Source of the DNA: Lepidodermella squamata
Lineage: Eukaryota > Animalia > Gastrotricha
Direction: 5' to 3'
DNA length: 64,000 bases
NCBI GenBank assembly: GCA_047495785.1
Contig: JBLDXI010000015.1
Location: 1,178,001 to 1,242,000 of the forward strand
Position 1 is the first letter of the stretch. Each line of letters opens with the position of its first letter. The notes under the pieces are model-generated. The model was not told the origin of the DNA. It saw nothing but the letters and a program-made list of their open reading frames with translations, and searched no databases. Below, piece by piece: positions 34,967-61,659 of the stretch. The position numbers and the translations under genes are program-made.

Positions 34967-35824
34967 TTATGCAGAGGCGGCGGTGGTGGGCTTCTTGTGG
35001 TTACGAGCCTTGGCAGAGCCAGAGCAAGAGCCAGACTGAGCCTGTTGCTGCTGACGAGACTTGGGAGCGGCAGAGCCGGAGCCAGACTGACCCTGCTGCT
35101 GACGGGACTTGGCGGCGGCGGAGCCAGACTGCTTCTGCTGGCGAGACTTGGGGGCAGCGGAGCCAGAGCCGGACTGAGCCTGCTGCTGCTGACGAGACTT
35201 GGGGGCAGCGGAGCCAGAGCCGGACTGAGCCTGCTGCTGCTGACGAGACTTGGGTGCGGCAGAGCCGGAGCCAGACTGACCCTGCTGCTGACGGGACTTG
35301 GCGGCAGCGGATCCAGACTGCTTCTGCTGGCGAGACTTGGGGGCAGCGGAGCCAGAGCCGGACTGAGCCTGCTGCTGCTGACGAGACTTGGGGGCAGCGG
35401 AGCCAGAGCCGGACTGAGCCTGCTGCTGCTGACGAGACTTGGGTGCGGCAGAGCCGGAGCCAGACTGACCCTGCTGCTGACGGGACTTGGCGGCAGCGGA
35501 TCCAGACTGCTTCTGCTGACGAGACTTGGGAGCGGCAGAGCCGGAGCCAGACTGACCCTGTTGCTGCTGACGAGATGTGGCGGCAGCGCCAGACTGCTGC
35601 TGACGGGCTTCAGCTTCTTCCGCAGAGTCTTCTTCCTCGGAGGATTCCTCGGAGTCGGAGTGCTCGTGGGAGTGCTCGTGGGAGTCAGAACCATGAGGAG
35701 GGGGAGGAGGAGGTCCGCGGGGTTGGCGGGCAACAGGGCCAGAGCCAGAGGCAGGGGGAGGACCCTGAGGAGCGGCCAAGACGGCGGCAACGAGAGCAGC
35801 AACCAAAGCGATGCGGACGAACAT
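34967..35824 (-). CDS. Secreted low-complexity repeat protein, copy 1 (285 aa)
   Basis: Signal peptide MFVRIALVAALVAAVLA, poly-Pro, a His/Ser/Glu block, then SRQQQ(G/A)QSGSGSAAPK-type repeats. Start, C-terminus and stop are conserved in all three copies. Confidence 0.85.
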   Translation of the reverse strand: MFVRIALVAALVAAVLAAPQGPPPASGSGPVARQPRGPPPPPPHGSDSHEHSHEHSDSEESSEEEDSAEEAEARQQQSGAAATSRQQQQGQSGSGSAAPKSRQQKQSGSAAAKSRQQQGQSGSGSAAPKSRQQQQAQSGSGSAAPKSRQQQQAQSGSGSAAPKSRQQKQSGSAAAKSRQQQGQSGSGSAAPKSRQQQQAQSGSGSAAPKSRQQQQAQSGSGSAAPKSRQQKQSGSAAAKSRQQQGQSGSGSAAPKSRQQQQAQSGSCSGSAKARNHKKPTTAASA

Positions 35825-36125
35825 TTTTAGTTTTTAGTTTTTAGTAAACTAAGTAGATTAAAAGGATAAGAAGCCGAAGGATAGTTGTGATTTTAGCTCT
35901 GAATTTCGCCTGCTTTTATGGCCAATTCCTTACGTGGGATGAGCGTTTCAGCTGCCTTCCCCCGTACTCGCGTGTTTGTTCCGTAAGAAAAAACAATCGG
36001 GTCGGTTTTGGTGCAATTTCACGAGCTGGCAGTTGTTTTACTACGACAGCTGATATTTTGGGCATGTTAGATGCCGATATCTTGTAAATGAATCACGCAT
36101 GGTTCACGTGCATATCACGGCCGCG
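35825..36125 (-). promoter_or_regulatory. Conserved promoter of the secreted repeat genes (also at about 39787-40065 and 47307-47585)
   Basis: The 5' flank is nearly identical in the three copies, with TATA-like CATAAAA (minus strand 35920-35914) about 90 bp above the ATG and a conserved GGTTCACGTGCATATCACGGCCG block containing an E-box. Confidence 0.55.
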
Positions 36126-36976
36126 AAAGTATCACCTATGTCAATTCCAAATTACACTGTTTTCATATTGTGGGGTGGGCGGCAGAACGACTTGCCCAAA
36201 AAAGAACCAAATGGCGTTAAACTAACTTTTTGCATCTTTGCCAAGTCATCGCTAGAAAAAAGCATTGCCAGCTTTTTCTGCGTATCAAAAGCGCTATGCC
36301 ATTTGTTTCCGGCATACCGCTTTGGCGCGAAACCCGCGATATCATATCGTTTGTCTTAACATTTCTATTTTGCTCAATCTCAGGAATTCGAGCGTTGAAG
36401 GCAGACAGAAAAAATCATCAATGATTGAATAGTAGACTGGATGAAACGATTGGCACTTCATAACGATTGGCCTTGGTTTTTTGATTGCCTTCCAATCTAG
36501 GAGAAATAATAGAAATGAGGTAAATCAGAAACTTCAAATCTAAGCTTTCACCGAAAGTTACTTATCGGCATCACTAATTTTCGCATTTCGCCGCTTCCCA
36601 ACACTGCCATGACAGTTGTGGAAATTTACAGGTCAAATGAATTTGGTCTTTTTCAAGAGGTATCGAATGGTTTTTACGAAGTGCCGGAAATTTCTGCGAA
36701 TTCAGAGCTCCAGAGCTAAGCGGATATTGAGAAAGTTTTCAAATGTGGGGCAATTGGTTGCTGTTGACGGCATCTTTCTGTGGCAGATAGATATATCTTG
36801 CTACTTGCTACTACGCACTTTTCGATCTTTTTCGAGAAAAAGTATTCAATGAAAGTGGCACGAGATTATAAAAACGTGCAGCGTACGCTCTCATTCATTT
36901 TTAATTTGAAGTCTAATTTGAAGTTGTTGCATTCATCATTTAATCGCCCGTTACAGCGCTTGCTTTTCCCGTCATC

Positions 36977-38590
36977 ATGGTTTTCTTCAGTATTAAAAAC
37001 GAGAAATCGAGACATCTTCTGTTCGTAGTAGCCATGTTGAGTGTGACGAGCATCAGCAGCTTTATTATTTTTGGCTATCATCCGTACCTGATCTCGTCGA
37101 CATTCAGCGGCAGTCGAGCAGCGATTAGAGATTATCAACCTGAACAACTAATGATTGATGTAATTCTAAAAAATGCGTCATCTGGATTCGATGTATCGTC
37201 AACGTTCCTCGATTATAGGCGTGAGCTGCTTCAAAGGAACGAACAAGCAGAAAAGCTGAGAGCCGCCATCGAGGAATTCTACCTCTCCCCTATGCGCAAT
37301 GATCTCAAGCGCAACGACAGCACGTTGAAGGTATGCGCGTTGAGAACCTAAAAATATATTTCTTAAAAAATCATTTACTATATCGCTGATTCCGCTCAGG
37401 TGTTGGCTTATCGGTGCCTTGACAATGAATTTTGCTGCGGGTTCGGCGATCGGCTTCGTGGGCTGATTGGGACGTTCTATCTCGCCATGGCTCTCAACCG
37501 GCTCTACTACATCAACTGGAGAGGGAAAAGCTTTCTGGAAGATTTTTTCCCATTTGAGGCGATTGATCGTGGCCAAGTTGAGGCTGTCCTATCAAGGATT
37601 CCGGAGAATGCGAGCCGTAATTTAGCGCACATGAACGACAAAAGTGAATTCGAAGTCTATGAGCTTAGCAAATCCTCGCGATTAAGCATGGAATATGCAA
37701 ACATTAGCCATGTGTCGATCCGTTCTAACTTGATGGTTCCTATCGAAGGTCTGTTGAGCAATTCTGAGTTTACTGGACTTTTCAAACAGATCACGGAGCC
37801 CATTTTGGATAGTGCGCATCAGTTCATCGACGGATCTGTTTTCCTTTCAGCAGCACTGAGAATTCTTCTGCCTCGGCCGTCACAAAAATTGAAGTCTTTA
37901 TTCGACCAATGCCTAGTGATCCGTAGCGGTGGCTTAATCAAGTGGAATGGCGCCTTTAAAATCGGCGTTCAAATTCGCTTCGGAGACAAGGGAAAAAGTA
38001 AATGCAAGTTGAACGAAGTCCCATGTTTTGCCGAGCAGGTAGCGAACCAGATAGCTGATCAAATGTCGATTGAATCGACTGGCAGCAAGCCTAAATTCAT
38101 CATTTTTCTAACATGTGATAAATTTGCAAATGAAACTAGGGTATCTTTCATCGAGACTCTGCATCGAAAAACAAAAGGAAGAACGGATTTCGAGGTGATC
38201 ACCAGTGCTGATATTTGTCCTCAGCTGCAACCGCGCCATTCCGGCCAAGACAAGCCCCCAGTGGGCAGAGATGCTTCATGGATTTTCAACGCGAAGACCT
38301 TTCTGGATTTCTATACTCTGACTCAAATGGATGAACTCGTCATTTCACGGAGCGGTTTTGGCGAGCTAGCCTCTTACCACAGCTTGAAGCCAACATATCG
38401 ATACATGTGCTACGGCTGCACCTTCAGACAGTCAAAAATGGATACTTTACGGCCTATCGAGCACGGTTACGGAGTTGGATTGACATTTAAAAGCACAACT
38501 GACGAATCAATCAAACGTGAGTGCCGATTCGAACATTTCAATCGCATCGGTAGAAATTTCGGTTTCGAGTTGATCACTTGGCCGCGTTGA
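36977..38590 (+). CDS. Type II membrane fucosyltransferase-like protein (alpha-1,2/alpha-1,6/O-FucT superfamily, GT23/GT37-like), copy 1. Exons 36977-37330, 37400-38590
   Basis: CCGFGDRLRG, motif I KIGVQIRFGD, motif II IFLTCD, motif III LDFYTLTQMDELVISRSGFG, an N-terminal anchor and a 69-bp intron. Confidence 0.82.
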
Positions 38591-39132
38591 AGTGAAATAA
38601 AATTATCTTTATGTTGCTAAATCATGGGCTGATTTATCACGATGAAACATTCTTAGTGAGTCGATGGCTGAACTGTTTTCTTTCTCCTGTTAAATGCTAA
38701 ATATATGATGGGCGTAGCGATTCATAATACGTACTTGTATTAGGAATCGCTGGTGCACCTGGGCTGATGGTGTATATTTTTCTGTGCGAATGCTCTGGGA
38801 ATTCGTATTTGCGGTAGGATGATGGTAGATGGTAGATTGATATATTTTTATCGGCCTGATTGAGCAGCTACTGTAAATATTGATAAGATTGATGTTTGGT
38901 TGAGTTTGGCGCTGGGTTGAACCATTTAATCTTATGCAACAAATTAATTGAAGAGTCACTCTTTATTAATGGAATGAAATCGAGAAACTATGCACTCATA
39001 TAGCAGCATACAAGCTGACGCAGGGGTAGCGTCGGAGATGGATTAGGCCTGTTGCATAGAGCAATTAGCAAGAGTAGCAGAAATTCGAAATTGGAAGAAT
39101 TAATACCAAAAAGAAACTACGAATGGATTTGC

Positions 39133-39786
39133 TTATGCAGAGGCGGCGGTGGTGGGCTTCTTGTGGTTACGAGCCTTGGCAGAGCCAGAGCAAGAGCCAG
39201 ACTGAGCCTGTTGCTGCTGACGAGACTTGGGAGCGGCAGAGCCGGAGCCAGACTGACCCTGCTGCTGACGGGACTTGGCGGCAGCGGAGCCGGACTGCTT
39301 CTGCTGACGAGACTTGGGGGCAGCGGAGCCGGAGCCAGACTGACCCTGCTGCTGACGGGACTTGGCGGCAGCGGAGCCGGACTGCTTCTGCTGACGAGAC
39401 TTGGCGGCAGCGGAGCCGGAGCCAGACTGACCCTGCTGCTGACGGGACTTGGCGGCAGCGGAGCCGGACTGCTTCTGCTGACGAGACTTGGGAGCGGCAG
39501 AGCCGGAGCTAGACTGACCCTGTTGCTGCTGACGAGATGTGGCGGCAGCGCCAGACTGCTGCTGACGGGCTTCAGCTTCTTCCGCAGAGTCTTCTTCCTC
39601 GGAGGATTCCTCGGATTCGGAGTGCTCGTGGGAGTGCTCGTGGGAGTCAGAACCATGAGGAGGGGGAGGAGGAGGTCCGCGGGGTTGGCGGGCAACAGTG
39701 CCTGAGCCAGAGGCGGGTGGAGGACCCTGAGGGGCGGCCAAGACGGCGGCAACGAGAGCAGCAACCAAAGCGATGCGGACGAACAT
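39133..39786 (-). CDS. Secreted low-complexity repeat protein, copy 2 (217 aa)
   Basis: Same signal peptide, acidic block and C-terminus ARNHKKPTTAASA as copy 1, with fewer repeats. Confidence 0.85.
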   Translation of the reverse strand: MFVRIALVAALVAAVLAAPQGPPPASGSGTVARQPRGPPPPPPHGSDSHEHSHEHSESEESSEEEDSAEEAEARQQQSGAAATSRQQQQGQSSSGSAAPKSRQQKQSGSAAAKSRQQQGQSGSGSAAAKSRQQKQSGSAAAKSRQQQGQSGSGSAAPKSRQQKQSGSAAAKSRQQQGQSGSGSAAPKSRQQQQAQSGSCSGSAKARNHKKPTTAASA

Positions 39787-40898
39787 CTTTAGAGTTTAGT
39801 TTTTAGTAAACTAAGTAGATAAAAAGGATAAGAAGCCGAAGGATAGTTGTGATTTTAGCTCTGAATTTCGCCTGCTTTTATGGCCAAATCTTTACGTGGG
39901 ATGAGCGTTTCAGCTGCCTTCCCCCGTACTCGCGTGTTTGTTCGGCAAGGAAAGAGAACCGGGTCGATTTTGGTGCAATTTTACGAGCTGCCAATTTTTT
40001 ATTGCGACAGCTGACATTTCCATGGTTTTACCGTTCATTAGGTTCACGTGCATATCACGGCCGTGATGTGAGATGCTGCTGAATCAACAACAAACTACAA
40101 CCTTTTTTCTAATCCGCTGCTGGTGTGCGGAGAGAAACAACCGCGTGGGTTGATTCTGAACTAACTTTCCAGTCGTCGGCATTTTTTTGAACATTTTTAC
40201 AAGTTAGAAATACAACTCGATTCCGGCATGTCGAATCTTGTTTCTTTCATGTAATCTTAAAATCGTCCAAGAATGAACAGAAAATTTAAAATTCAAACAC
40301 TGTCATCCAGCATGTTTTCTTCAGTGATATGAATCACCTGCTTTAGCGATCCTATTACATTTCCGCGAAAACTAAAGTGTGAACATTCTTTTATGAAGCA
40401 AAGCGTCGGAAAGTTGGATTTTGTAACTAATTAAAAGTATAGCACTTTCGTTTTTTTGCGAACCGAAGTGTCCTGAAGTACGTCTCATGCTTCCAAACGT
40501 TTCGTAAGAAAACCATTGTATACAGCAAAGCGCTAGTCCTATCGCTCCACTACTCATGGCTGCATCGAGCCGGCATAACAAAAGCACCCAAGTACACTTG
40601 TACCGAAATTCCAAAGGTGCTAGGTTAACCCAAGTGCTACAATTAATTACAGGGAAGTGTGGTAAATGCTCGAGGCGAAAATATTTCACAGCTCAAAACT
40701 AAAAAAAGATAATGCGATTAATGCTCTTCCATCTCAGTTTATTCACGTATACGTTCATTTTACCTGCTCAATCTCAATCAGGTGCGGGAGATTACATTGA
40801 GGATTACGGTTTTCCGGCAGCTGCACCTGAAGTAGGCTAAACTTCCTTGTAGTTTATGAACTTGTTGAGCAACTAAAGTTTAATCTAGTTTAATCCAG

Positions 40899-41902
40899 AT
40901 GAACTATTGCAAAACAATCGGCAATTGCTAGATGCTTGTAGGGATGGAGATTTGATCCGGGTTCGAGAGCTGGTTCAGCGCCTGGAATCTAGCGGCCAGT
41001 TGCAAATCGACTGGCAGGATGATCGTGATTCGCCGTGCTTGCCCAACCTAAAACAAGCTACATGCCTCATCCACACGATTGAATGCATGAACGCAACAAT
41101 GCCCAGACTCGCTTTAGTCACTTACCTTCTTCAAAAAAGATCGAGAGTCTCCATGAAAACATCTAATGGCTTGACGCCGCTTATGCTGGCAGCTGGAAGG
41201 CCTCTAGGTCTGGACGTTGCCAAAGTCCTCATTCAACAAGGAGCTGCAGTTGATGATCGATCAGTTAATAATGGTACTGCTTTGATGTTTGCAGCTTCAA
41301 ACCGTGCTGGAACAGAAATAACTCGCATTTTGATTCAACAAGGTGCGTCTGTTAACGCAAAGGATTCAGCTAATTGGTCGCCTTTGATGTTCGCCGCGAT
41401 CAACAGTTTCGGTAATGATATTGCCCAATTACTCCTGGGTAGGGGTGCCTCAGTTGGCGACAAAAATTCGAATGGAGAATCGCCAATGTTCCTAGCGGCG
41501 AGTTTGAACTCTAGAGGCTGGGATATGATGAGTTTACTCATCAGCCGAGGAGCTTCGATCAATGATAGGACCAACAATGGGACAACAATTTTGATGGGAG
41601 CTTCAGGTAACCCAAATGGGACTGATTTGGTTAGGCTTCTACTCAGTCGCGGAGTTTCGGTCAATGAAAAATCAACCAAAGGCCAAACTGCATTGATGTT
41701 CGCTTCGGCATCCGACTTGACCCTGCCAACTGTGAGAATCTTGCTCGATCGAGGGGCAAATATTAATGATAGGACAGTTACTGGTGAGAGTTCACTGATG
41801 GTTGCAGCCAGGAATGGGGCGTCTGCTGTTGCGCGACTTTTAGTTAGCCGAGGGGCCTCTCGCGACGGCTGCAGCAGCATCTATTCTTCATGCAATTCAT
41901 AA
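40899..41902 (+). CDS. Ankyrin repeat protein (about 8-9 repeats); 5' exon not resolved
   Basis: Tandem G-x-T/S-P/A-L-M-F-A-A...L-L-x-R-G-A-S-V-N repeats. The ORF has no ATG at its start and follows an acceptor TAATCCAG at 40898, so an upstream exon is likely (possibly 40556-40616). Confidence 0.8.
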
Positions 41903-42820: not shown

Positions 42821-45316
42821 ATGAAATTTGGAACTTTGTGGACGTTTCTCATCGCCATCATGAGCAGTGTATCGGTGGCTCGGTCGAATATATTTGAATA
42901 CGTTATTGCTCAGAGTGATTCGACCGAAAATGCGACGCTCTCCACGCCAATGCCTAATTTCATCACGTCGAGGAATTTCGGCCGTGGCTCGTCGAAGAGG
43001 CAGGTTATCTCTATTCTAGCATTAATAAGCTACACCGGGCAAGTACCAAGTGGCGTCGCCTTAACAAAATCAATGGAACTGGCATTGGACCGTCTTCGAA
43101 GTCTCCCGAACTGGCTCCGCGGTTACGAGCTGATCATCGAGACTATCAATGACCAGTGTTTGGATGATCTTGTTATCCGCAAATTCACGGAAAGAGCAGA
43201 TTCGAAAGGCTATAAAGGCATTATACCGCTTCCTATTGTGATCGGAAGTTTGTGTTCTGCTCAAGGTCAATTATCACTGGCTCAGATGGTTAAACATTAC
43301 GATTGGGTTGCAATCAATGTCCTCCAACAGTCGATGGAACTGTTTCAAGACCGGACGAAGTATTCTAACTTTTTCGCACTAGCTGAGCCATCCGAAATAC
43401 CCGTCCTCGCGCTAATCCACACGGCCGAGAAAATCGGTTGGCGAAAGGTTGCTATCATAAGTGAAATAGATTCATTCTGGAACCGTATCGAACGGTATGC
43501 GATTAACCAACTTGAACAGCGAAATATAACCATAACATGGTACGGAAAAGTTCAGTACAAGTCCGTAGATGACGAGGAGTGGATGGAAGCTTTTACTGAA
43601 ATGGCAAGATATCATCCGAGGGTGATTTTCGTAGGAGGGAGCTCCAGCATCAGCATGGCTTGTTGGCTCTATAAGTTCGGATTTTATGGCCCGAATTATG
43701 TGATTTTATACCCAGGCTGGACTAGACCAAGCCCATCCGCTGAAATACCGTCCTTCATAAAATCATGGTGCACCATAGAAAACGTAGTGGCAGTGATTAG
43801 GTCCATGGTCACAGCAGGTTTATCGAGTGTTTTCAACGACTTCCGTGACTCAACTGGACTGTCGAAGCCTGAGATGGTGAATGCGGTTTCATCTAGGATC
43901 GTCAAACCAGAGAGTCTTATTGGCGCTATCAATCTTCACGGGTCAAATATGTACGATTTGGCTTTGTTCACTGGCTTTCTCGTCAATTCGACTGTAGCTG
44001 TGTCTGAGTCAAGTGAGCTTTGCTATACAATCGTTTGAAAATCATGAATAACATTCATTTTAGAGAATTTATCATTGGTAGAGATGGTTTCTGATAATGG
44101 AAAATTCTCAGCGGTTGATATAATCAAAGAAGCGCTGTTTACTATGCAGAAGGTTTACGGCCAATTGGGCGAGTTTCAATTCGATGCGAAGACACAATAT
44201 AACTCAAAAGGGCATAGCACATTCAAAATAGCTCAGGCTGATGTTGTGAATGGGCGAGAGGAGCTTTCGATAGGTGGAACGTTCCGCATTAGTCAAACTC
44301 CTCCGCTCGATCTTTGGCCTGGCAAGCTACGATGGAGAACCAAAGATGGAGCACCTCCCAAGGATAGAGTAACTTTCGTTGATATTGAAGTCCCTCTCAT
44401 ACCAGCCCACACTACTGGTATTCTCACAGCTGTTGGAGCAATCGAGATATTAGCGATTATTACAGCAATAGCCGTTGTAGTGGTCAAACACAAGCTAGGG
44501 GCTTCCTCGAGATTCAAAATCAGTAAGCTTGATTCGCTGCGATTTCTTGGAAATTCTCTAATATCGAGTCAAGTTTTCGCTTTACCAATCGGCGTTATCG
44601 GAGGACAGATTACCGAGAAATGTAACGCTTTATCTGCGCTGCTGATTCTGGGAATGTCCATATCAACATTTTCTATCATCGTAAAGTTGCGTGAACAGTT
44701 TCCACCAGGCGTGTTTAACTTGAAAGGATCGCCTATGCTGTGGAGTAAATCAAAGGTCCTATTCTTCACTGCGGCCTATTTCGGGTCAATAATCGCTTTG
44801 ATGACAGCTTTTCTCGCAATATCGCCATTCGAATCCGCTAAAGTTTTCTTGAACGGCTACTTCGACAGTGAAAATATGAGTGTTTACTACCACGAGTACG
44901 TCTCCATTTGTCGATTAAGAGGTGGAATCTCGAGTTTGGCACTTGCGATTTCTGTTACAGCCCATCAATTGCTTGCGCTAAGCGTCGCCGCATACCAAGG
45001 CTTCACGATTTACAAAACTCAAAACCGAAAGTCGAACTCAGATTTGAAGAGACTGAGCTTGAGTGTCTACGTTGTTTTCATGATCATCCTTGCTGCTTTT
45101 CTGATATCTTTGACTATGAACCAGCGTAGCGTGCTTATAGTAGCTTCTGCCGCTTGCCTGATCATCTCGGCTACTAATGTCATATTACCATTCACTGGGA
45201 AGCCGCGTCTTGGTAAATTAGACACCGGTGTGGTACAGAAGGTAGCACGAGTACCGAATCGTGGATCGTTCAGGGTTCCGAAAGTACCTTCACGGCCACG
45301 ATTGACGACAGCCTGA
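42821..45316 (+). CDS. Class C GPCR, GABA-B-like architecture (Venus flytrap plus 7TM, no Cys-rich domain), copy 1. Exons 42821-44012, 44064-45316
   Basis: Signal peptide, periplasmic-binding-type domain (LRGYEL...DQC, IGSLCS, GWRKVAII, PRVIF), linker WRTKDGAPPKD, seven TM helices and a 51-bp phase-1 intron. Confidence 0.85.
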
Positions 45317-46029
45317 TTCATATGCGGGAGCCTGATGAGTATTTGAGGGTGGCACAACATCTTGATCGGCTGCCTGGAACAAATTTGATTCGTCTTAGTT
45401 TACATAATACCTTTATCATACTGAATAAGCGATCATTTCTCTAATATGTGTACCGAAATTTCCATAACAAGCAGCCCAATACAACTTTCAGATCCAATAA
45501 CTCTGCTTACGTCCCTTTCAACGGGATGGGAAGCGAAAAATAAAAAGGGGCAGCGTTGAGTGAAAAGACAGAGGCGAATTACTTCTTCGTAAAGGTGACG
45601 TAATCTAAGGTGCACTCCGAGCTTTCGACACATTCATTCCTGCCTGATCATTTCGGCAACTGCAGCGTCTGGCAGAAGTTTGAAATAACTTTTAGTTACT
45701 AATAAGCTGGTGCTCCGTCTTGTTCAAAGATGTAAAAGTCATTTTGCTGTTCGCTGGCAGTCATTGAACTGGCCATTTGGATCGAGGCGTTTTAGAAAAA
45801 GCAGCGAAAGTATTGAGTGAAGTCTATATTAATCCCATACATCTATCATAGCGTAAACCAACGTAACCAAGCTGGTAAAAATACTGTAATGCTCGAAAAT
45901 ATACGGCATACCAGTATAATATATCCCCAATTCATAATATAATACTATCACAATAAAAATAATTCGTTTCATAGCCCGTGGTAAATGTTCGAGAGATACT
46001 GTAAGCCTCCAGTGCGCATAAATTCTGGA

Positions 46030-46153
46030 TGGCTGTTCCACGCGAAAACCTTTCTTGATTCTACGCTTCGACTCGCATGGATAAATTCGTCTTTTCACGC
46101 TGCAGTTATTGCTAGCTAGCCTCTTACCACACACAGCTTGAGCCCAACATATC
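46030..46153 (+). pseudogene. Fucosyltransferase relic (motif III region)
   Basis: TGGCTGTTCCACGCGAAAACCTTTCTTGATT...GCTAGCCTCTTACCAC...CCAACATATC aligns to FucT copy 1 at about 38278-38400, with indels and a stop. Confidence 0.75.
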
Positions 46154-46661: not shown

Positions 46662-47306
46662 TTATGCAGAGGCGGCAGTGGTGGGCTTCTTGTGATTACG
46701 AGCCTTGGCGGAGCCAGACTGGCCCTGCTGCTGACGGGACTTGGGGGCGGCAGAGCCGGAGCCAGACTGACCCTGCTGACGAGACTTGGCAGAGCCAGAG
46801 CAAGAGCCAGACTGCTTCTGCTGACGAGACTTGGCGGCGGCAGAGCCGGAGCCAGACTGACCCTGCTGCTGACGAGATTTGGCGGCAGCGGAGCCGGACT
46901 GCTTCTGCTGACGAGACTTGGCGGCGGCAGAGCCGGAGCCAGACTGACCCTGCTGCTGCTGACGAGACTTGGCGGCAGCGGAGCCGGACTGCTTCTGCTG
47001 ACGAGACTTGGCGGCGGCAGAGCCGGAGCCAGACTGACCCTGCTGTTGCTGACGAGATGTGGCGGCAGAGCCAGACTGCTGCTGACGGGCTTCAGCTTCT
47101 TCCGCAGATTCTTCTTCCTCGGAGGATTCCTCGGAGTCGGAGTGCTCGTGGGAGTGCTCGTGGGAGTCAGAACCATGAGGAGGGGGAGGAGGAGGTCCGC
47201 GGGGTTGGCGGGCAACAGGGCCAGAGCCAGAGGCAGGGGGAGGACCCTGAGGAGCGGCCAAGACGGCGGCAACGAGAGCAGCAACCAAAGCGATGCGGAC
47301 AAACAT
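46662..47306 (-). CDS. Secreted low-complexity repeat protein, copy 3 (214 aa)
   Basis: Same ends as copies 1 and 2, with a different repeat order. Confidence 0.85.
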   Translation of the reverse strand: MFVRIALVAALVAAVLAAPQGPPPASGSGPVARQPRGPPPPPPHGSDSHEHSHEHSDSEESSEEEESAEEAEARQQQSGSAATSRQQQQGQSGSGSAAAKSRQQKQSGSAAAKSRQQQQGQSGSGSAAAKSRQQKQSGSAAAKSRQQQGQSGSGSAAAKSRQQKQSGSCSGSAKSRQQGQSGSGSAAPKSRQQQGQSGSAKARNHKKPTTAASA

Positions 47307-51504: not shown

Positions 51505-53196
51505 TCAAATGAAATCAATGGGAGATTTAGTCACAGTTCGACTATCCGCTAGCTTTTTAGGGCGTTGAGGATAGATAGTCTTCGGCCGCGTGCTAATCTC
51601 GAAACCAAAATTAGCACCTATACGATTGAAGCGCCTGAACTGGCACTGAATCTTCTTCAGCGATCTATCAGTTTGGCTTTTAAAATCAATTTCATTGCCA
51701 TAGCCATGCTCCATAACAATAGGCCGCTTTCTATCTAGTTCTGACGGTATAAAGCCGCAACCGAAACATTGATGCCGATAAGTTTGCTTCAAACTGTAAA
51801 CAGAAGCAAGCTCGCCGTAACCGCTGCGAGAAACGACGAGTTCATCCATGCGTGTCAGAGCGTAGAAATCTAGAAAGGTTTTCGCGTTGAAAATCCACGC
51901 GTCTTCTGTACCATTCGGCGGCTTGCGGTAGTCGGAATGGTGCGGCTTGAGCTTTCGACAAACGTCAGAGCTTGTTATCACATCCACGTCAAAATCCGAG
52001 ACTGTTTTATTGACTGATCGATATAGCGCCGTCACAAAGGATCTGCGTGTTTGGTGGATCAACTTATCGATTGTTAGAAAGATAAGAAATTTCGGCTTTG
52101 TCCCTGTCGATTCAACGGTCATTTGATCACCGATTTGCTTGGCTACCTGTTCAGCAAAGCATCGAACTTCATGAGGTCTGATGAAGAACTGTTTAGCGTC
52201 TCCGAGACGGATTTGAACTCCAATTTTAAAAGCACGGTTCCACTCGGATAGACCACCACTTCGGCTCACTATGCATTGGTAGAATAGATCGCTTAACTTC
52301 TCCGACGGTCGGGGTAGAAGAATTCGCAAAGCTGCCGAAATCATAACAGATCCATCGATATATTGTTCTTTGATGGGTTCGAGCAGCTTTTTGAAGAGTT
52401 CTGTGAATTCAGGATTGCTCATCAGGCCTTCAATAGGCGTGTATGAGTTGGCATGGAGCGAAGCATAACTGACATTTTCGTAATCCCGTTTCAGTCGCGG
52501 CGATTTAGTCATCTCATAGTAGGGAAGTTCCGATCCAAGAAAAATGTTGCGGGATGAATCAACGTGGCTGGGAAGGTGTGATATAATCGCTTCGACTCGG
52601 CTGCGATTCAATGCATCGAAAGGGAAGAAGTCGTTTAGGACATGATTACGTGTCCAGTTGATGTAGAGCGGACGGTTGAGAGCCATTGCAACGTAGAAGG
52701 CTCCTACTACCCCACGAACTCGATCAGCGAATCCACCACAAATTTCATCCCCAACACAACGATAAGCAAACACCTAAAAGCGATTCCAGGATTCGTGATG
52801 GGCACAATTGTAATTAATTGAAAAAATAACCTGTATCGCTGAGTTGCTGCTTTTGTTGAGAACATCTTGCATTGGCGCGATGTAAAATTGTTCGATGGCC
52901 GCTTTCAATTTCTCAACTTGTTCGTTCCGCACTTGCAACTCGCGCCTGTAATCAAGAAAGGTTGATGAACCGATGAACCCGGCTGATGCATTCTTCAGAA
53001 TCACATCGATCATCAATATCGAATTGTCGGCGCGATGAGCCGCAGAAGCAGAATAATCGACATCAAATGCCTTCCAGGTGCGAGAAGGGTTGAAAAGCGA
53101 CAATAAAATGCTCAAACAACAAAAGCTCGCAATACTGGCGAGTAATATTCGAAACCACAAACGCTTTGTATCATCAGCTTTGCTGTATAGTAGCAT
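51505..53196 (-). CDS. Fucosyltransferase-like protein, copy 2. Exons 53196-52831, 52773-51505
   Basis: ICGGFADRVRG, KIGVQIRLGD, IFLTID and LDFYALTRMDELVVSRSGYG. A 57-bp intron lies at the conserved position. Confidence 0.82.
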
Positions 53197-53735
53197 CGCC
53201 TTTATTAAACTTTTTTCCGATAAAGAAAATGACAACGAAAATTCAATGGACTTTCATGAATGACGTCGCTACTATGAATTCACGAAATTCAACATTATTT
53301 TCATTCATTTGAAGCGCGTGCCGCTTCATTTCCTTAATTTTAATCGGTAGCGTTATTCTTCCGTGAATGCTTTTGTCGGTTAAAAAGACGATCGAGAGCA
53401 ACCTCTCGACATTTAATAATGCCCAGTATCGACAATAACCAGCATTTCTCCAAGCAGGGGATCACTGGTTTACTGGATGGTGAAAATTCAATGAGCATAT
53501 TTTGAAAATCGTCATAGCCAACCAAAAGTCTCCGGATGATCTGTTGTTAGAATTTTTAAATGATGACTGGTGACTGCACACCATTTACCATAACATAACA
53601 TGAGTCAGATCAGATAATATAAGTTCATTTTAATCAAAAATCCTTCATCTATCGCAATAAATAATCGACAGTTCAAGCAAATTTCACAATAACGAGAATT
53701 TTTAGGCAATAATGCTGGCAGCATTATCACAGAGG

Positions 53736-53851
53736 CTAAAATGGTCTGGTGAAAAACTCGAAACCAAATTTTCTACCGATGCGATTGAAGTGATCAAAGT
53801 GGCACTCGTGTTTCATTGATTTGTCAGTCACGCTGTTGAACCTGACTTCAC
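53736..53851 (-). pseudogene. Duplicated 3' tip of a fucosyltransferase gene
   Basis: Encodes EVRFNSVTDKSMKHECHFDHFNRIGRKFGFEFFTRPF*, nearly identical to the C-terminus of copy 3 (54060-54175). Similarity stops abruptly upstream. Confidence 0.8.
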
Positions 53852-54059: not shown

Positions 54060-55665
54060 CTAAAACGGCCAAGTAATCAGCTCGAAACCAAAGTTTCTAC
54101 CGATGCGATTGAAATGGTCAAATCGGCACTCGTGTTTCATTGATTTGTCAGTCACGCTTTTGAACCTGACTTCACCGCCGTAGCCATGGTTGATAGGCCG
54201 CATAGTATCCAATTTCGACGGCCTGAAGGTACAGCCAGAACATAGGTACCGATATGTTGGCTTCAAACTGTGGAAGGAAGCCAGCTCGCTGTAACTACTG
54301 CGCGAAATCACAAGTTCATCCATGCGTGTAAGAGTGTAGAAATCCAGGAAAGTTTTTGCGTGGAAAATCCACGCTGCTTCTTTTTCGATCGGTGGGTTTT
54401 CTATATCGCAATGACGCGGCTGTAGCTGAGGGCAAATGTCAGAGCTTGTGATCACTTCGAAGTCAAAATGAGTAGTACCATTGACCTTCCGATTGAGCGC
54501 TTCAATGAAAGATGCCCTAGTTTCATTCGCAAGTTTATCGCTTGTTAGAAAAATGAGAAATTTAGCCTTCTTCCCTTTCGATGCAACAGACATTTGATCC
54601 GCAATTTGATTGGCTACCTGCTCGGCAAAACAAGTGACTTCGCTTGGCCTGTTGAAGAACTTGCCGGGATCTCCTAGGCGAACATGAACGCCAATTTTAA
54701 ACGCACGATCCCACTCAGATAGGCCGCCGCTACGGTTGACAAGGCATCGGACGAATAAATCCTGTAATTTCTTCGAAGGCCGGGAAAGAAGAATTCGCAA
54801 AGCAGCCGAAATCATTACAGATCCGTCCATATATTGTTCTCCAACGCCCAAAATCGGCTCCATGAGCGATTTGAAGAGCCCATTGAATTCCGGATTGCTG
54901 AGCAGGCCTTCGATAGGTGTGAAGGAGTTGGTAAGAAATGCAGCATACTTAAATGTTGAGAAACGAGCGCTAAATTGCGGCAATTTGGTTAGTTTGTACA
55001 GCTTGTGTTCTCTCCAGTCGTGCATATATACAAAATGGCGGGCTTTTTTCCTCTCAAGCTTTGATAAAACAGTCTCGACACGGCGTTGATCTATGGCTTC
55101 GAATGGGAAGTAATCGTTGATCACATGATATTTCGTCCAGTTGACGTAGTAAAGCCGGTTGAGAGCCATGGCAACGTAAAACGTCCCAACTAGCCCGCGA
55201 ACGCGGTCTCCGAATCCACCACATAAGTCGGTCCCGACACATCGAAAGGCAAGCACCTGTTTCGTAAAAAAACGACGATACTTATTTTTGACGCATAATA
55301 ATTGCTAGTGTCATGGAAACCTCTAATTTAGTACCATTGCTGTGATTGAGCTTATGCCGAATTGGTGAAAGGTAGAATTTCTCGATGGCCGCTTTCACCT
55401 TCTCAGCTTGTTCGTTCCTCTTGTGAAGCTCGCGCCTGTAATCAAGAAAAGTTGATGACTTGCTGAATCCATCTGAAGAATTCTTCAGAATCGCGTCGAT
55501 CATCGATGAAAAATTGTGAGATTCTTGAATCACCGATTGATTTTGGCGAAGTGTAGCCCATTCGAGATGAGGTCGATAGCTTGGAAATAGTAGGGCAATG
55601 CTGCAAATGGTTAGTACGCCAGCGATGGTAATTAAAAGCCTAAAGCTTTTCGAATTCTTATTCAT
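54060..55665 (-). CDS. Fucosyltransferase-like protein, copy 3. Exons 55665-55321, 55256-54060
   Basis: LCGGFGDRVRG, KIGVHVRLGD, IFLTSD and LDFYTLTRMDELVISRSSYS, with a 64-bp intron. Confidence 0.85.
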
Positions 55666-56027: not shown

Positions 56028-58517
56028 TCATTGTACTTCAGGCTCATTAGATAATCTAGGGGACTGCGCGCCTCGAGAAATTCTGAGCGAAATATGTGAC
56101 GGCGCTATCGACAGTTTCGGCCCTTGTTTCAGCGAGGCCAGTTTATCAATGAGAGGCAGGGCTGAATTAGCGACAACGATTGTTAAAGAAGCCGCAGAGG
56201 CGACCAGCATCATGTGAAGAGGATTAAGTGTTAGTATGATCAAAACGGCTGCTAACAGAATCAAAAACACAAGGTATACACTGGAACCGGTTTTCTTCAG
56301 CTCGGGAGTTATGGCTCGACTTTTCACGGCATGAGCGTAGTAGCCTTGAAGGGCTGCGTACAACAACGCGAAAACTTGTTCAGCCCCGATTGCAGCTCCG
56401 ATTGCCAAAGTTGTCTCACTGCTCTTGGATTGGCAAGTCAAGACGTACGGTTTGTAGTAGATACTAGGATCCTCCGCATCCACGTAAGGACTAAGCTGGA
56501 CAGTGTAAGCTTCAAATGGCGAAGCAGAGAGGAACGCCACGAGCAATCCAATAACCGAACAGAAATAAGCCGTTATGAAAAAAGCAACCCTAGACCTGCT
56601 CCACTGATTCATCGTCCTACTTCTGGTGAAAATGCCAGGAGAGAACTTTCGTCGAAGCTTCGCGATGATGGAAAATGTTACCAGAGAGAAACCGAGAATA
56701 AGAAGAGCTGAAAATGTACTGCAGTGGTTACTTATCAAATCATATCGCGAAAGATCCCAAGGCAGGGCGAAAACCTGAGCAGCTAGTATGATGTTGCCCT
56801 TAATCAATACCAAATCAAACCAAGTAAATTTCGATTCAGATCCTAGTGATAATTTTGTTTTCATCAGACAAACCACGGCTATTGTAGTTAACAAGACAAT
56901 CTCAAGCACTCCAAATGCCGTCAGAACTCCGATTGCGACTGTAGATAGAAGAGGAACCTCCACTGGAATGTATTTAATGCTATCTTTTGGAGGCAGCCCA
57001 TCCTTCGTCCTCCACCGCAGCTTGCCTGGGAAAAGGTCCAATGGTGGGTTATGGCTAATTTTGAAGGTACCAGCCAACGACAGATCTTCCCTTCCATTTT
57101 TCACATCAACCTGCACCACCTTGAAGACACTGTGGCCTTTTGAATTGAACTTGGTCTTCTCGTCGAATTGAAACTCGCCTATTTGAGCATAGACCTTCGG
57201 CATGGTAAACAGAGCTTCTTTGATGACGTCACTAGCAGATATTTTCCTGTCTAGTGTCGTTAGCTCCGACAGGGAGATGTTTCCTGTAGCAACAATTTAA
57301 AGACAACTTTCTAAGCCGGATAGAGAAAGCTTACTTGATTTAGCTACAGCAACTGTGGCATTGACTAAGAATCCGGTGAACAAAGCCAAATCGTAGATGT
57401 TTGATCCCAAAAGGTTTATTCCAAGAATTGCAGGTTCGGGTCTGAAAATCCTAGATGCAACATCATTCACGACTTCAGGCTTTGACAACCCAAAGGAATC
57501 GCGAAAGTCGTTGAAAGAACTCGAAAGACCACCTGTTATAATTGACCTCATCACTTCAGCGATATTTTCTCTTGTACACCACGATCTGACGTAGGCCGGA
57601 ATTTCAGCACCAGGGTTAGGTCGAGACCAGCCGGGAAATAACAGGACGTAATTAGGGCCATAGAAACCGAATCTGTAAAGCCAGCATACCATACTGAGCG
57701 CTGAATCCCCTCCAACGTAGATTATCCTTGGATTGTAACGAGCCATTTCTGTGAAGGTATCAATCATCTCCCTTTCACTCGTTGTTTTGTACTGGACCTT
57801 GCCATACCATGTAACCGTGATGTTGCGTTGTTCGATTTGATTGATCGCGTAACGCTCGATGCGGTTCCAAAACGGGTCGATTTCGCTTATCATCGCAATC
57901 TTCCGCCAGCCGATCTTTTCGACGGCGTTTATCAAGGTAAGAACTGGTATTTCAGATGGCTCAGCTAGCCCGAAGAAATTCGGGTATTTTGGCCTGTCGA
58001 GGAATAACTCGATGGATTGTTGGATCAAGTTGAGGGCAACCCAGTCATATTGCTTTACAATCTGCGCGAGAAATCGCTGTCCTTGAGGTGCACACAAATT
58101 TCCTATTAGTAACGGTAGGGTATAAACGCCTTGCTTGCCGTTTGAATCAACTCGTTGAATGAACTTCCTTACAGTAACATCATCGGAGCATGTGTCATCG
58201 AAGGCCTCGATAACGAGTTCGTAGCCATCCAGCCAGTTAAACGTGCTCCTCAAACGGTCTAGAACCATCTCGATAGGCTTTGTCGTTACCGGACCGTTCG
58301 TACTGTAGCTTAGCAAAGCTACGACTGAAATGATTTCTTTCCTAGTCGGATCTTTACTGAAATTTCGCGAGATGATGAAATCTGGCATTGGGCTGGTTAG
58401 GGTAACGTTTTTCCCAGCATCGCTCCTTGAGTGTATGTCTTCGAATGTTGTAGACTGGGCCAAACTAACACAGGCCAGGTTAGCTGCAATTGCAATTAAA
58501 AGGTATAAAAAGAGCAT
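56028..58517 (-). CDS. Class C GPCR, GABA-B-like, copy 3. Exons 58517-57335, 57283-56028
   Basis: Paralogue of copies 1 and 2 with the same intron position (51 bp), a signal peptide and 7TM. Confidence 0.85.
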
Positions 58518-59218
58518 GATGAATCTGAGACGTAATAAAAAATAAAGAACCTAGACTCTCTCTGATGTAGGTGAGACGTGACTTCGAGGGCGATGCCACT
58601 TACAATATTGAATTTCACCATTAATTATGAGCCGCAAAATGGTCTGTCTGTGAAATTGTGTTAATGGACTTTACTCTTCCGCAATACGCTTCAAAAACTT
58701 GCGGTGCAACTAAAAAGCATCCGAAATTAACATTTCCTGCTGTCATCCTGAGCCGCAGACACTTCTCAGTTGTCTCACAATTAAGCGCCAACATTTATTT
58801 TCGATTTCCCATTCGTAAGATGAGCTCTCTCCTCCGCAGTTAATAAAGTGAAAAATATTGATAGCGGAAAGCGGAAAAATAATTTTTTCAACCATACATT
58901 TTTCGATTATTCAAAAGCTGATTTGCTTATGCACACCTCGGCAAAATAAAACAACTCAACCTCGAAGCTAAGTCTGTAGCCATTTCCGTCAAGATATTCC
59001 GAAACCCTTGTTAACATTTGGGAGGATTGAAATTTAACTATGCAACATGCATTAGATTTATGGTCCAAAAATAAAGATTTCACAAGATATCATAATATGT
59101 TTTACACAGCAAAGCAGGATTGACAATAGCCGGTGCAATGGTTATGATGACATTTCATTCCCGAATCTGACTTATTGCACAATTTATGAGGGATGAGAAT
59201 CACCTTCAATGAAGCTTC

Positions 59219-61659
59219 CTAATTGGCATCATTCCCCGAAATTGAACCATGTATTTCCCGCGCGAATGCAATACAGCTGGAAAGAGCCGAAATTCCCAGC
59301 GCAACAAAAGAATAAGTTATTGCCTCAGCTGTAGGTTGCCGCACAATCTGGCCAACCAGAATGCCAAAAACTATCAGAGTAGCCATATTAACCTGTCCGA
59401 TTGAAAATAGCTTCATCTGTCGAACCTTCTCAGCATAGGCCAAGTCTCGCTTCCCGGCTCTCGATCTCACGGCCACAACGCATGTCATGACTGCAATCGC
59501 GTTTAGAGCGCCTAAGCAAGGCAGCCAAGCGAAACTATATTCTGAGAAGCAAATCTCAGCTTGCTTATCGAAATAAGCATCTCGCTCGTAATTATAAACC
59601 GCACCGCCCGTCAAGCTTACTATTTTCGGAAACGGCTCGTCACTTCCAAGCCAAACCACGATTATTAATAGATTTGCAAGAAGATAGGCGACGGAAGCTT
59701 TTAGATGGCTTCCACGCTTATCGCTGCCAGCTTTTTTGTCCGGAGGCTCTATGGCTACTGATTTTAGGTCGACGGAAGGAGTGTCTGCTGTCAGGGAAAT
59801 GCGGGGCGCTAGGACTGACTTCTTTCTAGTCGCTGTTGAGTGTGAAAAATGTGCGCTGCTCCCTCGATGATTCGAATTATAAGCCTTTTGCGGAATCTCA
59901 GATTGCAATTCCAAGATTTTGAAGAGAAAAGCTGCGTTCAGACATGCGAGAGCCAACGCAGTTGAAAGTACGCGCAAAACACAGATTTGCGAGCCATCCT
60001 CAACAAACGTGACTGACGCGAAGTTGCAAAGCAGACAGCCGACGAAAAACACAAATTTGAACATCTTTTGGACAGAATTTTTCTCCTTGGATAACAGGAA
60101 CGCTAACATCAACAGCTCTCCTACACTGATGACCCCAGCCAAGCTGTCTGCTAAGATTTCGACCCACTTAGGGGGTATGCTCATTTCTCGCATTACTGGC
60201 GGCATATCAATCGGAGGTTTCCCGCTCATCCAAACCGGTGCATTGAGTTCCTCGATCTTGTAACCGCTTATATCCGCGGCGACTTTGCTTGCATTTCTCA
60301 CGACGCTGTGAGTCATTTTCATGAAGCTCGAGGGGGTCCATTGAAAAACTGCTTGAAGTTCGACTTCAACCTCAACAGCAGGGGAGTACTCGGCATAACC
60401 GGCATGCAGGGTTTTGAAGCTCAGTCTTGATAAACTTGAATTAATCGCAAGGCTCACGGCCTCAGGATTCACTTTATAGTCTCCAAGCGTTGAATTTCGA
60501 GACCTCAAGTTAGCCTCAGCTGCATCGAGGCCTAGAAGAGCAACTAATGCAGCATCGTGGCACAAATGACGGGTCATTTCTGTTTTGTAGTCAGCCTTAG
60601 TCCGTTTTGATAGCATCTGCTCGAACTGGGGCATGTCATAGCCTAGACTTGTCGGGCCCATATTCAAGAGATTCGTGAAAATCGCCCCGACGTAAAACAT
60701 TTGCTTAAACTGCTCGATCAATATCTCACGGGTGCAGCCTGGCGGTAGCTTCGGCAGTCTCGCTGTCGGGTCGAAAAGGGTCGTCGTCTGAGGAATGAAA
60801 ACGTAACGACTACCCGTGATTCCTAAATTGTACGCGGTACATGCGAAAAGTATAACCGGAGGAACGGTGGAGAATTCGAGAAAAATAACTCGTAAATCGC
60901 TTGATTTGAATGATTGAATAGCGAGAGCGTCCACATCGACTACTAACCCGAACCACGGGACGGCTATTCCATTTTTCACCAAGACGTCTTGCATAGCTAC
61001 AGCGCCAGCGACGTCTCGAGGGTTTGTTGTACCTGAGATGATGGCTACGTTATTCCATTTGCCGACGAATTTAGCGAACATGAGACGAGAATAGACGACG
61101 AGTTCTCCCGGGATTTTGATGTGGTATAGGTTCGGAAACATAACCCGGTTTGCGGTCATTATCGGAGCTGCACAGCCAAGGGCAACTGAGACTGTTCCAA
61201 TGTGGTGGAGGGTTGATGCTAGTCTTTGACAGCCGCCTAAAACTGACGTTAAAAACTATTTTGCAATCAAAATTAAGGGAAATAACCTGAGAAATATGGC
61301 CCGATGGTAACTGGGAGAATGGTGGATGGATTTGAGTCCCTAACAAACTGAACTGTTGAGGTGACGGAATTCCCAGAGTTAGCTGACTCGTCTTTGTAAA
61401 CAACTTGGATTTTGTAGCCAGGGATGAAGTCCGGTCGTGAGTTGGCGACGTCAATCGCAACTTCCATAGCTGCTTTGCAGACATCAGGATCGCGGGGATC
61501 GTTACCTGTTATCGTAATCAGTGATTGTATGGTGAGGTTTGTTCGCTTAGTTGGATGAACGGCTCCTGGCGGTACGGCGTCAGTCCAGTTTAGCTGGCCT
61601 GTGGTGTAAGAGATCCAGCTAAGAGTGCAAACCGCCGTCAGAAGTATGTCTTTCATCAT
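59219..61659 (-). CDS. Class C GPCR, GABA-B-like, divergent copy 4. Exons 61659-61287, 61236-59219
   Basis: Signal peptide, AMEVAIDVANSRPDFIPGY, IGPYFSGGC, FPNL, KWNNVAII, W...KPPID linker and 7TM. A 50-bp phase-1 intron joins the two ORFs in frame. Confidence 0.82.

Follow-up and report, generated by a model that had tools for sequence, protein, structure and literature searches.

Organization of the locus

Within the window, a 64,000-nucleotide stretch of contig C15 of the gastrotrich Lepidodermella squamata, genes for a secreted repeat protein (Sec), for fucosyltransferase-like enzymes (FucT) and for GABA-B-type receptors are interleaved over 27 kb, in a receptor-dense and duplication-prone part of the contig (about 1.06-1.24 Mb). 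All 13 elements that an earlier note had read from the bare sequence, from Sec1 through the last receptor, C4, were found at the positions and on the strands claimed for them, and the two fragments among these, the FucT relic and the FucT tip, are real. The genes and features are as follows.

15923-17140, forkhead gene; Forkhead domain found
33304-34398, + strand, PhyH-like dioxygenase gene (Pfam PhyH, E 2.3e-8); left neighbour, bystander
34967-35824, - strand, Sec1; S/Q/A/G-rich repeat protein of 285 aa, open reading frame with N-terminal hydrophobic leader
36977-38590, + strand, FucT1; two exons, GT..AG intron at about 37331-37399; N-terminal TM anchor, type II membrane, GT-B fucosyltransferase-like
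39007-39850, - strand, Sec2 transcription unit; intronless CDS 39133-39786, 5' end at about 39850
40907-41902, + strand, ankyrin-repeat gene (ANK); Pfam Ank_2, E 7.6e-57; confined to duplication unit A
42821-45316, + strand, receptor C1; two exons, short intron near 44.04 kb; ANF_receptor, E 8.6e-16
45735-45818, + strand, receptor 3'-end relic of 84 bp; 72.6% identity to C2 51073-51156
46003-46153, + strand, FucT relic; pseudogene fragment with indels (1 bp deleted, 4 bp inserted)
46662-47306, - strand, Sec3; 214 aa
48704-51213, + strand, receptor C2; ANF_receptor, E 1.7e-13; sister of C1
51505-53235, - strand, FucT2; intact, conserved intron
53732-53851, - strand, FucT tip; copy of the 3' terminus of a FucT3-like gene, matching that of FucT3 itself at 87.5-88% identity
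54060-55665, - strand, FucT3; its large exon, 54060-55256, is the basis of a structure model
56028-58517, - strand, receptor C3; ANF_receptor, E 4.8e-10; outgroup to C1 and C2
59219-61659, - strand, receptor C4; N-terminal exon 61273-61659, ANF_receptor, E 1.7e-5, just under the cut-off

The orientation flip reported at about 51.3 kb is placed between the stop codons of C2 (51213) and FucT2 (51505), and the three repeated adjacencies described earlier (receptor and FucT on the same strand, FucT tail-to-tail with Sec, Sec divergent from a receptor) are all present. The inverted arm is composed of same-family tandem pairs (C4/C3 and FucT3/tip/FucT2) and contains no Sec gene. DNA identity is 90-92% among Sec1 to Sec3 and 65-70% among FucT1, FucT2 and FucT3; C3 is 68% identical to C1 and C2. 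Sec, FucT and the class C receptors are three kinds of functional genes, interleaved, with all copies under purifying selection (dN/dS 0.11-0.26).

Multiple displacement amplification (MDA) yields inverted chimeras, and the published assembly of this species was built from MDA product, with suspected chimeric reads filtered (PMC11660948), so that the flip at 51.3 kb might be a chimeric assembly join. This is extremely unlikely, as identity between the arms is no more than 65-70%, which does not fit an MDA palindrome of one sequence; moreover, a DNA run (X2) gives coverage in every depth bin over the part of the locus compared, 37.1-43.1 kb.

The flanks had been described as bracketed by SGNH enzymes, which was not confirmed: the left neighbour is the PhyH-like gene, Pfam PF13472 finds SGNH domains at 22 places genome-wide and at none inside the window, and the open reading frames 30594-31214 and 62603-62941 have no Pfam match. 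The proposed FoxL2 gene some 17 kb away is a forkhead-domain gene, the match being at the level of the Forkhead domain only. The best paralogue of ANK is located elsewhere and is only 35% identical. The host genome is compact, with short introns.

Three gene families

The receptors are, as far as their sequences tell, orphan GABA-B-like class C receptors, in which a flytrap domain (ANF_receptor) is joined to a 7TM region that is GABA-B2-like; the latter match comes from the 7TM exon of C1 (GABA-B2 chain 9jqx_B, E 2.7e-4). The Pfam family 7tm_3 matches none of C1, C2, C3 and C4, and in an upstream C4-like paralogue it reaches 27.7 bits, below the 33.5 cut-off. C1 and C2 share 80% DNA identity over 2473 bp (dS 0.58-1.04, dN/dS 0.11-0.26), while C3 and C1 are 48-63% identical as proteins, their synonymous sites being saturated. 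C1, C2 and C3 each carry a conserved short intron which, like the receptor 3'-end relic, the earlier note had missed. C4 falls in another class C-like subfamily, a very large one, and is no recent paralogue of the other three: its flytrap is 23% identical to that of C1, it has no match among PDB sequences, and 68 strong paralogues were scored among 1319 candidates. Pieces of class C receptors number more than 1,000 genome-wide, with 1305 and 1319 first-look candidates.

The FucT proteins are predicted, on the strength of a structural model, to be GT-B fucosyltransferase-like enzymes of the Golgi type, with a type II membrane anchor and a GT37-like fold. An AlphaFold2 model of the large exon of FucT3 (pLDDT 86.6, pTM 0.89) has Arabidopsis thaliana FUT1 (a xyloglucan alpha-1,2-fucosyltransferase of GT37) as its best Foldseek match (E 5e-12, TM 0.56-0.58), followed by NodZ, FUT8 and POFUT proteins at about 1e-6, and the top matches listed (FUT1, NodZ, FUT8, POFUT1, POFUT2) are all fucosyltransferases. 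Identity to solved structures is 12-15%, a word-based protein search with a FucT exon found nothing, Pfam gives no match to the FucT proteins of the window, and distant relatives reach 17-20 bits against XG_FTase, under its 23.4 cut-off, with about 30 residues aligned. A profile built from 23 paralogues retrieves 2006 representatives, and across those 23 the conservation of R193, D305 and S320 is 90% or higher, the Arg lying in a G-V-x-x-R-x-G-D motif. We take this Arg to be that of the GDP-fucose-binding motif, and the Asp and Ser to be the C-terminal D...S motif, of FUT8 and NodZ; a catalytic role of these residues is putative. Every FucT carries a conserved short intron of about 60-70 bp, also missed before. 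A reading of FucT2 as disrupted by an in-frame stop was rejected, the stop falling inside this intron. FucT-like matches number at least 110 genome-wide, with the local clade (FucT0, from a cluster upstream, to FucT3) restricted to this region of C15.

The Sec proteins make up a small orphan family, with no relatives found by Pfam or by word-based protein search. They are secreted, Cys-poor S/Q/A/G repeat proteins and intrinsically disordered. A leader peptide opens the protein, and its numerous Ser residues are candidate carriers of glycans; Sec1 contains three 189-bp higher-order repeats (TRF: period 189, 3 copies, 95% matches), and some paralogues have KR-containing units between repeats. 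Each gene sits in a cassette of roughly 1 kb that includes a conserved promoter (about 170 bp) of its own, and the cassette edges are identical at nine loci. Sec1 and Sec2 are 92% identical in DNA; Sec3 with 0.7 kb of 5' flank constitutes a 1.4-kb block 90% identical to Sec2, and the non-coding DNA upstream of the transcription start is 92.3% identical between Sec2 and Sec3.

Traces of expression come from one RNA-like whole-animal library (X1), which has contigs on FucT1, Sec2 and ANK, so that these may be co-expressed; such contigs do not rank expression or show cell types. Those over Sec2 span 39007-39850, with zero on either flank, and the loose contig end at 39850 reads like a SMART template-switch adapter when judged by eye.

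Duplication history

The repeated adjacencies are not a matter of chance; they follow from segmental duplication, as seen in colinear paralogous blocks (offsets 7751, 7529 and 5895 bp) and matching sister pairs. There is good support for one tandem duplication, that of a unit 6-7.5 kb long, with FucT1-Sec2-(ANK)-C1 (unit A) corresponding to FucT relic-Sec3-C2 (unit B). The earlier claim that three families were amplified as a unit stands for this one event: the blocks are colinear, C1 and C2 are sisters, and the relic has FucT1 as its nearest relative (77.5% identity, versus 66-70% to FucT0, FucT2 and FucT3, in an alignment of 151 shared columns). An older receptor-FucT pair, C3-FucT3, agrees with the FucT tree and with the ranking of receptor identities.

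A sister cluster lies about 90 kb upstream on C15 and comprises FucT0, Sec0, a gutted Sec copy from which the coding sequence has been deleted, and relics of a FucT and of a PhyH gene. FucT0 is the sister of FucT2 (79% DNA identity over 1679 bp, dS 0.64, tree support 97/94). The two clusters are tied together by an older duplication; next came the single tandem duplication of the FucT-Sec-(ANK)-receptor unit, after which the second copy lost its FucT. Decay has struck each type of member independently, as seen in the FucT relic, the FucT tip, the receptor-tail relic and the gutted Sec copy.

The families also differ in apparent age. Synonymous divergence (dS) is 0.64-1.6 between FucT pairs (FucT0-FucT1, 1.58) and 0.58-1.04 for C1-C2, compared with 0.02-0.09 among Sec1, Sec2 and Sec3 and 0.24 for Sec0-Sec2. 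The Sec copies are about 10 times younger than their partner genes, or have been homogenised. The near-identity of the paralogues suggests gene conversion, and recent events of this kind, or of re-copying, in which the neighbours took no part may be what keeps the cassettes alike.

These observations bear on the original proposal of a linked substrate-modifier-sensor locus, in which FucT glycosylates Sec, a class C receptor senses Sec or a related cue, and the trio has been kept and amplified together by selection. One three-gene unit did duplicate, Sec has a leader and many Ser as possible glycan sites, the FucT proteins are anchored in the type II manner that is usual for Golgi enzymes, and FucT1 and Sec2 are both present in X1. 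The 5' end of C1, however, has no coverage in that library although the Sec2 contigs are very deep. Nor were all member types kept after duplication: in unit B the FucT has decayed to 150 bp beside an intact Sec3 and C2, the inverted arm has no Sec, and the Sec copy of the sister cluster is gutted. Co-duplication of a neutral neighbour had been named beforehand as evidence against the proposal, and this is what was found, a bystander PhyH-like gene having been copied to the sister cluster, where it decayed to a relic (192 bp, 73% identity, 2.5 kb from FucT0); the family occurs at six places in the 121 Mb genome, one of them this relic. Together with the mismatched ages, the Sec loci elsewhere that lack a FucT neighbour, and the genome-wide abundance of receptors and FucT, these findings leave the proposal unsupported and make selection for such a trio very improbable.

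Neighbourhood of Sec genes across the genome

Two narrower pairings need to be weighed. On C15 there are three tail-to-tail FucT-Sec pairs (FucT0/Sec0, FucT1/Sec2 and relic/Sec3) and two divergent ones, all within about 120 kb, and the FucT0 to FucT3 clade is confined to the same region, as might be expected if enzyme and substrate were held tail-to-tail by selection with the receptors as bystanders. All of these pairs descend from one ancestral pair, however, and so count as one observation; the FucT of one is dead, FucT0 and FucT1 have diverged far more than Sec0 and Sec2, and no FucT lies within 6-10 kb on either side of five Sec loci (on C10, C18, C43 and at C15:0.43 Mb). Such a selected enzyme-substrate pair is very doubtful.

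The second pairing joins Sec to the receptors without FucT, the Sec repeats giving rise to secreted peptides that act on the adjoining receptors, or both kinds of gene having regulatory domains in common in a single cell type, secretory or sensory. Of seven independent regions, four have Sec no more than 3 kb from a class C receptor and five no more than 10 kb, where random placement would give 7-19% by a rough estimate; the two are often head-to-head, 0.6-1.7 kb apart. The receptor subfamilies differ between loci, the Sec-adjacent receptors being only 25-30% identical, so that simple co-duplication does not explain the association. The KR-containing units of some paralogues are in keeping with a peptide precursor, and the nearest neighbour of Sec by language model is a multi-peptide precursor family (apidaecin; score 0.75), a weak lead only. 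Against this, the usual K-S/A-R arrangement does not match a canonical convertase site, the background rate is rough, a genome with so many receptor pieces has many kinds of secreted genes inside its receptor arrays, and a common location in duplication-prone DNA may be all that brings young multi-copy genes together with receptor arrays. A functional Sec-receptor pairing is very unlikely.

Interpretation and comparison with known systems

The locus probably took shape through successive rounds of local segmental duplication, together with inversion and the decay of genes. The repeated adjacencies would then be a by-product of the duplication of multi-gene segments and not evidence that the three products interact. 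A more speculative elaboration, to which we give little credence, is that Sec is a mobile or gene-converting cassette favouring class C receptor neighbourhoods and, on C15, also the FucT clade. The layout would then represent the shared regulatory neighbourhood of one secretory or sensory cell type (e.g. an adhesive or cuticle gland), with Sec as a fucosylated product or as the precursor of repeated peptides sensed by the adjoining receptors.

Among known systems, the locus can be compared with clusters built by tandem or segmental duplication of lineage-specific chemoreceptor-type families, of which the sponge receptors mentioned below are an example. By analogy, Sec resembles the silk-, glue- or mucin-like secreted repeat families that are highly expressed and evolve in concert: a leader precedes low-complexity repeats in tandem, copies differ in their number of repeats, and paralogues are near-identical. 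Unlike these, it has no sequence similarity to any known family. The FucT proteins have in common with the FUT1/GT-B fucosyltransferase superfamily (NodZ and FUT8 of GT23, POFUT1 and POFUT2 of GT65 and GT68) the fold, a conserved Arg and an N-terminal membrane anchor, but differ in their sub-threshold Pfam scores, their low sequence identity and their animal host. Expansions of GABA-B-like class C receptors have been reported in sponges (bioRxiv 10.1101/120998) and are likewise lineage-specific, with a flytrap and 7TM region without a cysteine-rich linker, arranged in arrays and under purifying selection; the gastrotrich family is far larger, and its array is interleaved with two unrelated families.

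Gene Content and Surroundings

Every element named in the earlier note is present in the window, on the strand claimed for it, and self-comparison of the window yields a further receptor-tail relic.

Genes and relics of the cluster (window positions)
34967-35824, minus strand: Sec1, orphan secreted S/Q/A/G repeat protein gene
36977-38590, plus strand: FucT1, fucosyltransferase-like gene
39133-39786, minus strand: Sec2
40907-41902, plus strand: ANK, ankyrin-repeat gene
42821-45316, plus strand: C1, class C (GABA-B-like) receptor gene
45735-45818: receptor-tail relic, 84 bp
46003-46153, plus strand: FucT relic
46662-47306, minus strand: Sec3
48704-51213, plus strand: C2, receptor gene
51505-53235, minus strand: FucT2
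53732-53851, minus strand: FucT tip
54060-55665, minus strand: FucT3
56028-58517, minus strand: C3, receptor gene
59219-61659, minus strand: C4, receptor gene

The SGNH enzymes said to bracket the cluster are not found there: PF13472 has no match in the window, and the left neighbor is a PhyH-like gene. Farther left, a gene 18 kb from the cluster carries a Forkhead domain (15923-17140), two ankyrin plus SOCS-box (ASB-like) genes lie at 21491-22720 and 23881-24987, and an ORF at 2534-3181 gives a sub-threshold match to rhodopsin-type 7tm_1.

Duplication History

The proposal that the three families were amplified as a unit holds for one event or more. FucT1, Sec2, and C1 are colinear with the FucT relic, Sec3, and C2 at offsets of 7751, 7529, and 5895 bp in window self-comparison; the 1.6-kb difference in offset is due to the ANK gene, whose best paralogue is 35% identical, with none close. 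Sister pairs agree with these blocks. The relic is 77.5% identical to FucT1 versus 66-70% to the other FucTs (151 columns, with indels), and pairwise identity makes C1 and C2 sisters, at 80% in DNA, with C3 68-69% identical to either. The local FucT clade takes the form ((FucT1,FucT3),(FucT2,FucT0)) in a tree, with support 99/98, FucT0 belonging to a paralogous cluster upstream, and the receptors group as (C3,(C1,C2)) by pairwise identity. Taken together, these groupings suit the adjacency of C3 and FucT3 as an older copy of a receptor-FucT pair.

The inverted arm, to the right of the strand flip at ~51.3 kb, runs C4-C3-FucT3-tip-FucT2, placing members of the same family side by side, and contains no Sec gene. 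The window occupies C15:1178001-1242000 in a genome of 121.2 Mb and 151 contigs; the published Lepidodermella squamata assembly, of 122 Mb, 157 contigs, and 43% GC, derives from MDA-amplified DNA (PMC11660948). The two arms around the inversion junction at 51.2-51.5 kb appear to differ too much in sequence for an MDA palindrome.

Against a functional module, ages differ within the cluster and members decay singly. Values of dS are 0.58-1.04 for C1-C2 and 0.64-1.6 for the FucT pairs (65-70% DNA identity in window self-comparison), compared with 0.02-0.09 among Sec1, Sec2, and Sec3 (90-92%). The low dS of Sec, together with the 92% identity of the non-coding DNA that precedes the start sites of Sec2 and Sec3 (638 bp), argues for later, separate homogenization or re-copying of Sec. 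Decay is independent among cluster members, with the FucT relic, the FucT tip, the receptor-tail relic, and a Sec copy whose coding sequence is deleted (in the upstream cluster) as the decayed members. Purifying selection acts on every intact copy (dN/dS 0.11-0.26), so the genes themselves are functional.

The upstream sister cluster, ~90 kb away on the same contig (C15:1112001-1142000, loci L001-L003, genes at 1.12-1.14 Mb), contains a PhyH relic, FucT0 (plus strand), Sec0 (minus strand), three receptors, the gutted Sec, a 330-bp FucT relic, and an ANK gene. The three receptors are intronless, C4-like, and 76-81% identical among themselves. The PhyH relic (192 bp) corresponds to the PhyH-like dioxygenase gene adjoining Sec1 in the window (33304-34398), a member of a family with only 6 places genome-wide. 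It thus records a neutral neighbor duplicated along with the cluster, which the earlier note itself had named as telling against its reading. Four tandem copies of the same dioxygenase family, 53-55% identical to the window copy, occur at 3.62-3.65 Mb of contig C7.

The Secreted Repeat Family

The Sec proteins proceed from a leader peptide through Pro-rich, His-rich, and acidic Ser-rich segments to S/Q/A/G repeats of 29-30 residues each. They match no Pfam family, and a word-based protein search with Sec2 gives no relative at E <= 0.001. Repeat number has been in flux very recently: Sec1 contains three 189-bp higher-order repeats of 95% identity (35022-35588), compared with units of 87-90 bp in Sec2 and Sec3.

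Homology among Sec genes extends over a cassette of ~1 kb with like edges at nine loci, from ~115-170 bp upstream of the transcription start site (TSS) to just past the stop codon. Every Sec paralogue, on other contigs too, has a core promoter of ~170 bp in which a pair of E-box-like CAGCTG elements and a ACGCGAGT..GGGG stretch are invariant. Because the copies carry this promoter from upstream of the TSS, an origin of Sec as a retrocopy is ruled out. Another CAGCTG-like box lies ~130 bp beyond the Sec stop.

Sec core promoters
Window 39851-40020, 35890-36058, and 47371-47540
L002:1680-1800 (sister cluster)
L012:4620-4740 (Sec locus on contig C10)

In Sec paralogues on contig C10 and at 0.43 Mb of C15, the Q/S/G repeats are interrupted by a unit that contains Cys and KR (K-A-R-C-N-K-R-S-T-T...). 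It is possible that this unit provides dibasic processing sites, candidates that the window copies lack.

Sec paralogues with the KR-containing unit
L004/L005, C10:735316-735975
L008, C10:847835-848644
L010-L012, C10:1891404-1892366 and 1907515-1908516
L013, C15:432826-433614

The Fucosyltransferase-like Family

In each FucT, an N-terminal exon encoding a membrane anchor is followed by a conserved GT..AG intron of ~60-70 bp. The apparent in-frame stop of FucT2 falls in this intron (~58 bp), ruling out that gene as a pseudogene.

Searched exon by exon, the FucTs match no Pfam family; FucT3 has no meaningful match in a PDB sequence search, and its exon nothing at E <= 0.001 in a word-based protein search. 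An AlphaFold2 model of the large exon of FucT3, from an alignment of 23 paralogues of the same genome (pLDDT 86.6, pTM 0.89), has Arabidopsis FUT1 (GT37) as its top Foldseek match, E 5e-12, followed by NodZ, FUT8, POFUT1, and POFUT2. Language-model neighbors agree (O-FucT, FUT8_N_cat, NodZ, XG_FTase). Searching a library of 1.84 billion proteins with a profile of the paralogues yields 2006 representatives, a few of which give sub-threshold XG_FTase matches. With fold matches and no Pfam match above threshold, the predicted structure places FucT in the fucosyltransferase superfamily at the level of fold; membership in Pfam GT37 does not hold. A literature search on GT37-like enzymes in animals found nothing relevant.

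Further FucT-like arrays occur at C19:1.96-2.19 Mb, C13:1.948-1.955 Mb, and C7:2.481-2.486 Mb, and two divergent FucT-like genes at C15:2598466-2620180.

The Receptors

Pfam recognizes ANF_receptor flytraps in the receptors, and the 7TM exon of C1 matches the GABA-B2 7TM at E 2.7e-4. The 7TM exons do not reach Pfam 7tm_3, with a sub-threshold match in one paralogue, and a PDB sequence search with C4 gives no meaningful match. A short intron separating flytrap and 7TM exons is common to C1, C2, and C3. The window sits in a receptor-dense stretch of C15, where C4-like genes occur at 1103962, 1124280, 1130677, and 1138932.

Transcription

Two sequencing runs were compared, as contigs, with part of the window: X1, from 2015, whose RNA nature is a guess, and X2, from 2024, which is DNA-like and covers the entire examined stretch. 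FucT1, Sec2, and ANK each bear X1 contigs; depth is zero across both intergenic stretches and nearly so at the 5' end of C1. Loose ends of X1 Logan contigs at 39007 and 39850 look, by eye, like SMART cDNA adapters, and the latter puts the Sec2 5' end ~64 nt upstream of the ATG. These remnants suggest that X1 is RNA-derived and that they mark transcript ends. Sec contigs are far deeper than others in X1, but depth in contigs does not rank genes; the Sec paralogues also co-map.

Proposed Functional Linkage

The earlier note saw in this locus a candidate new system of linked substrate, modifier, and sensor. Its observation is largely right and its co-duplication claim partly so; the new system is unsupported, given the mismatch in ages, independent decay, an arm devoid of Sec, the PhyH bystander, and Sec loci lacking a FucT within 6-10 kb per side (C10:0.73, 0.85, 1.89, and 1.91 Mb; C18:0.32; C15:0.43; C43:0.07 Mb). 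The partner families are also very large: an own-genome search gives at least 110 FucT-like matches, and receptor candidates number 1305-1319 at first look.

A nominal excess of Sec genes next to class C receptors is of lasting value. Of seven independent regions, four have such a receptor within 3 kb of Sec and five have one within 10 kb, where ~7% and ~19% are expected for ~1,000 receptor genes placed at random; against this crude null, drawn from candidate counts, nominal P is ~7e-4 and ~3e-3, respectively. Simple co-duplication of pairs does not explain the pattern, as neighboring receptors are 25-30% identical between loci and the Sec copies differ by dS of 0.02-0.9. Young duplicates and receptor arrays may simply share unstable DNA; a real functional link, whether of Sec with receptor or of FucT with Sec, is in each case very improbable.

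The locus is best explained as an ordinary segmental duplication cluster of multiple ages, with two expanded families and an orphan secreted one as its components. Also of lasting value are the Sec family, with its concerted evolution, conserved promoter, and deep contig coverage in the RNA-like run, and the FucT family. Were the module real, it would give animals a rare example of substrate, enzyme, and receptor in physical linkage; the evidence is of textbook duplication, inversion, and decay of multi-gene segments, which can mimic a designed module. The size of the FucT family is unusual for an animal, the closest solved structure to this plant-FUT1-like family being a plant cell-wall enzyme, Arabidopsis FUT1.
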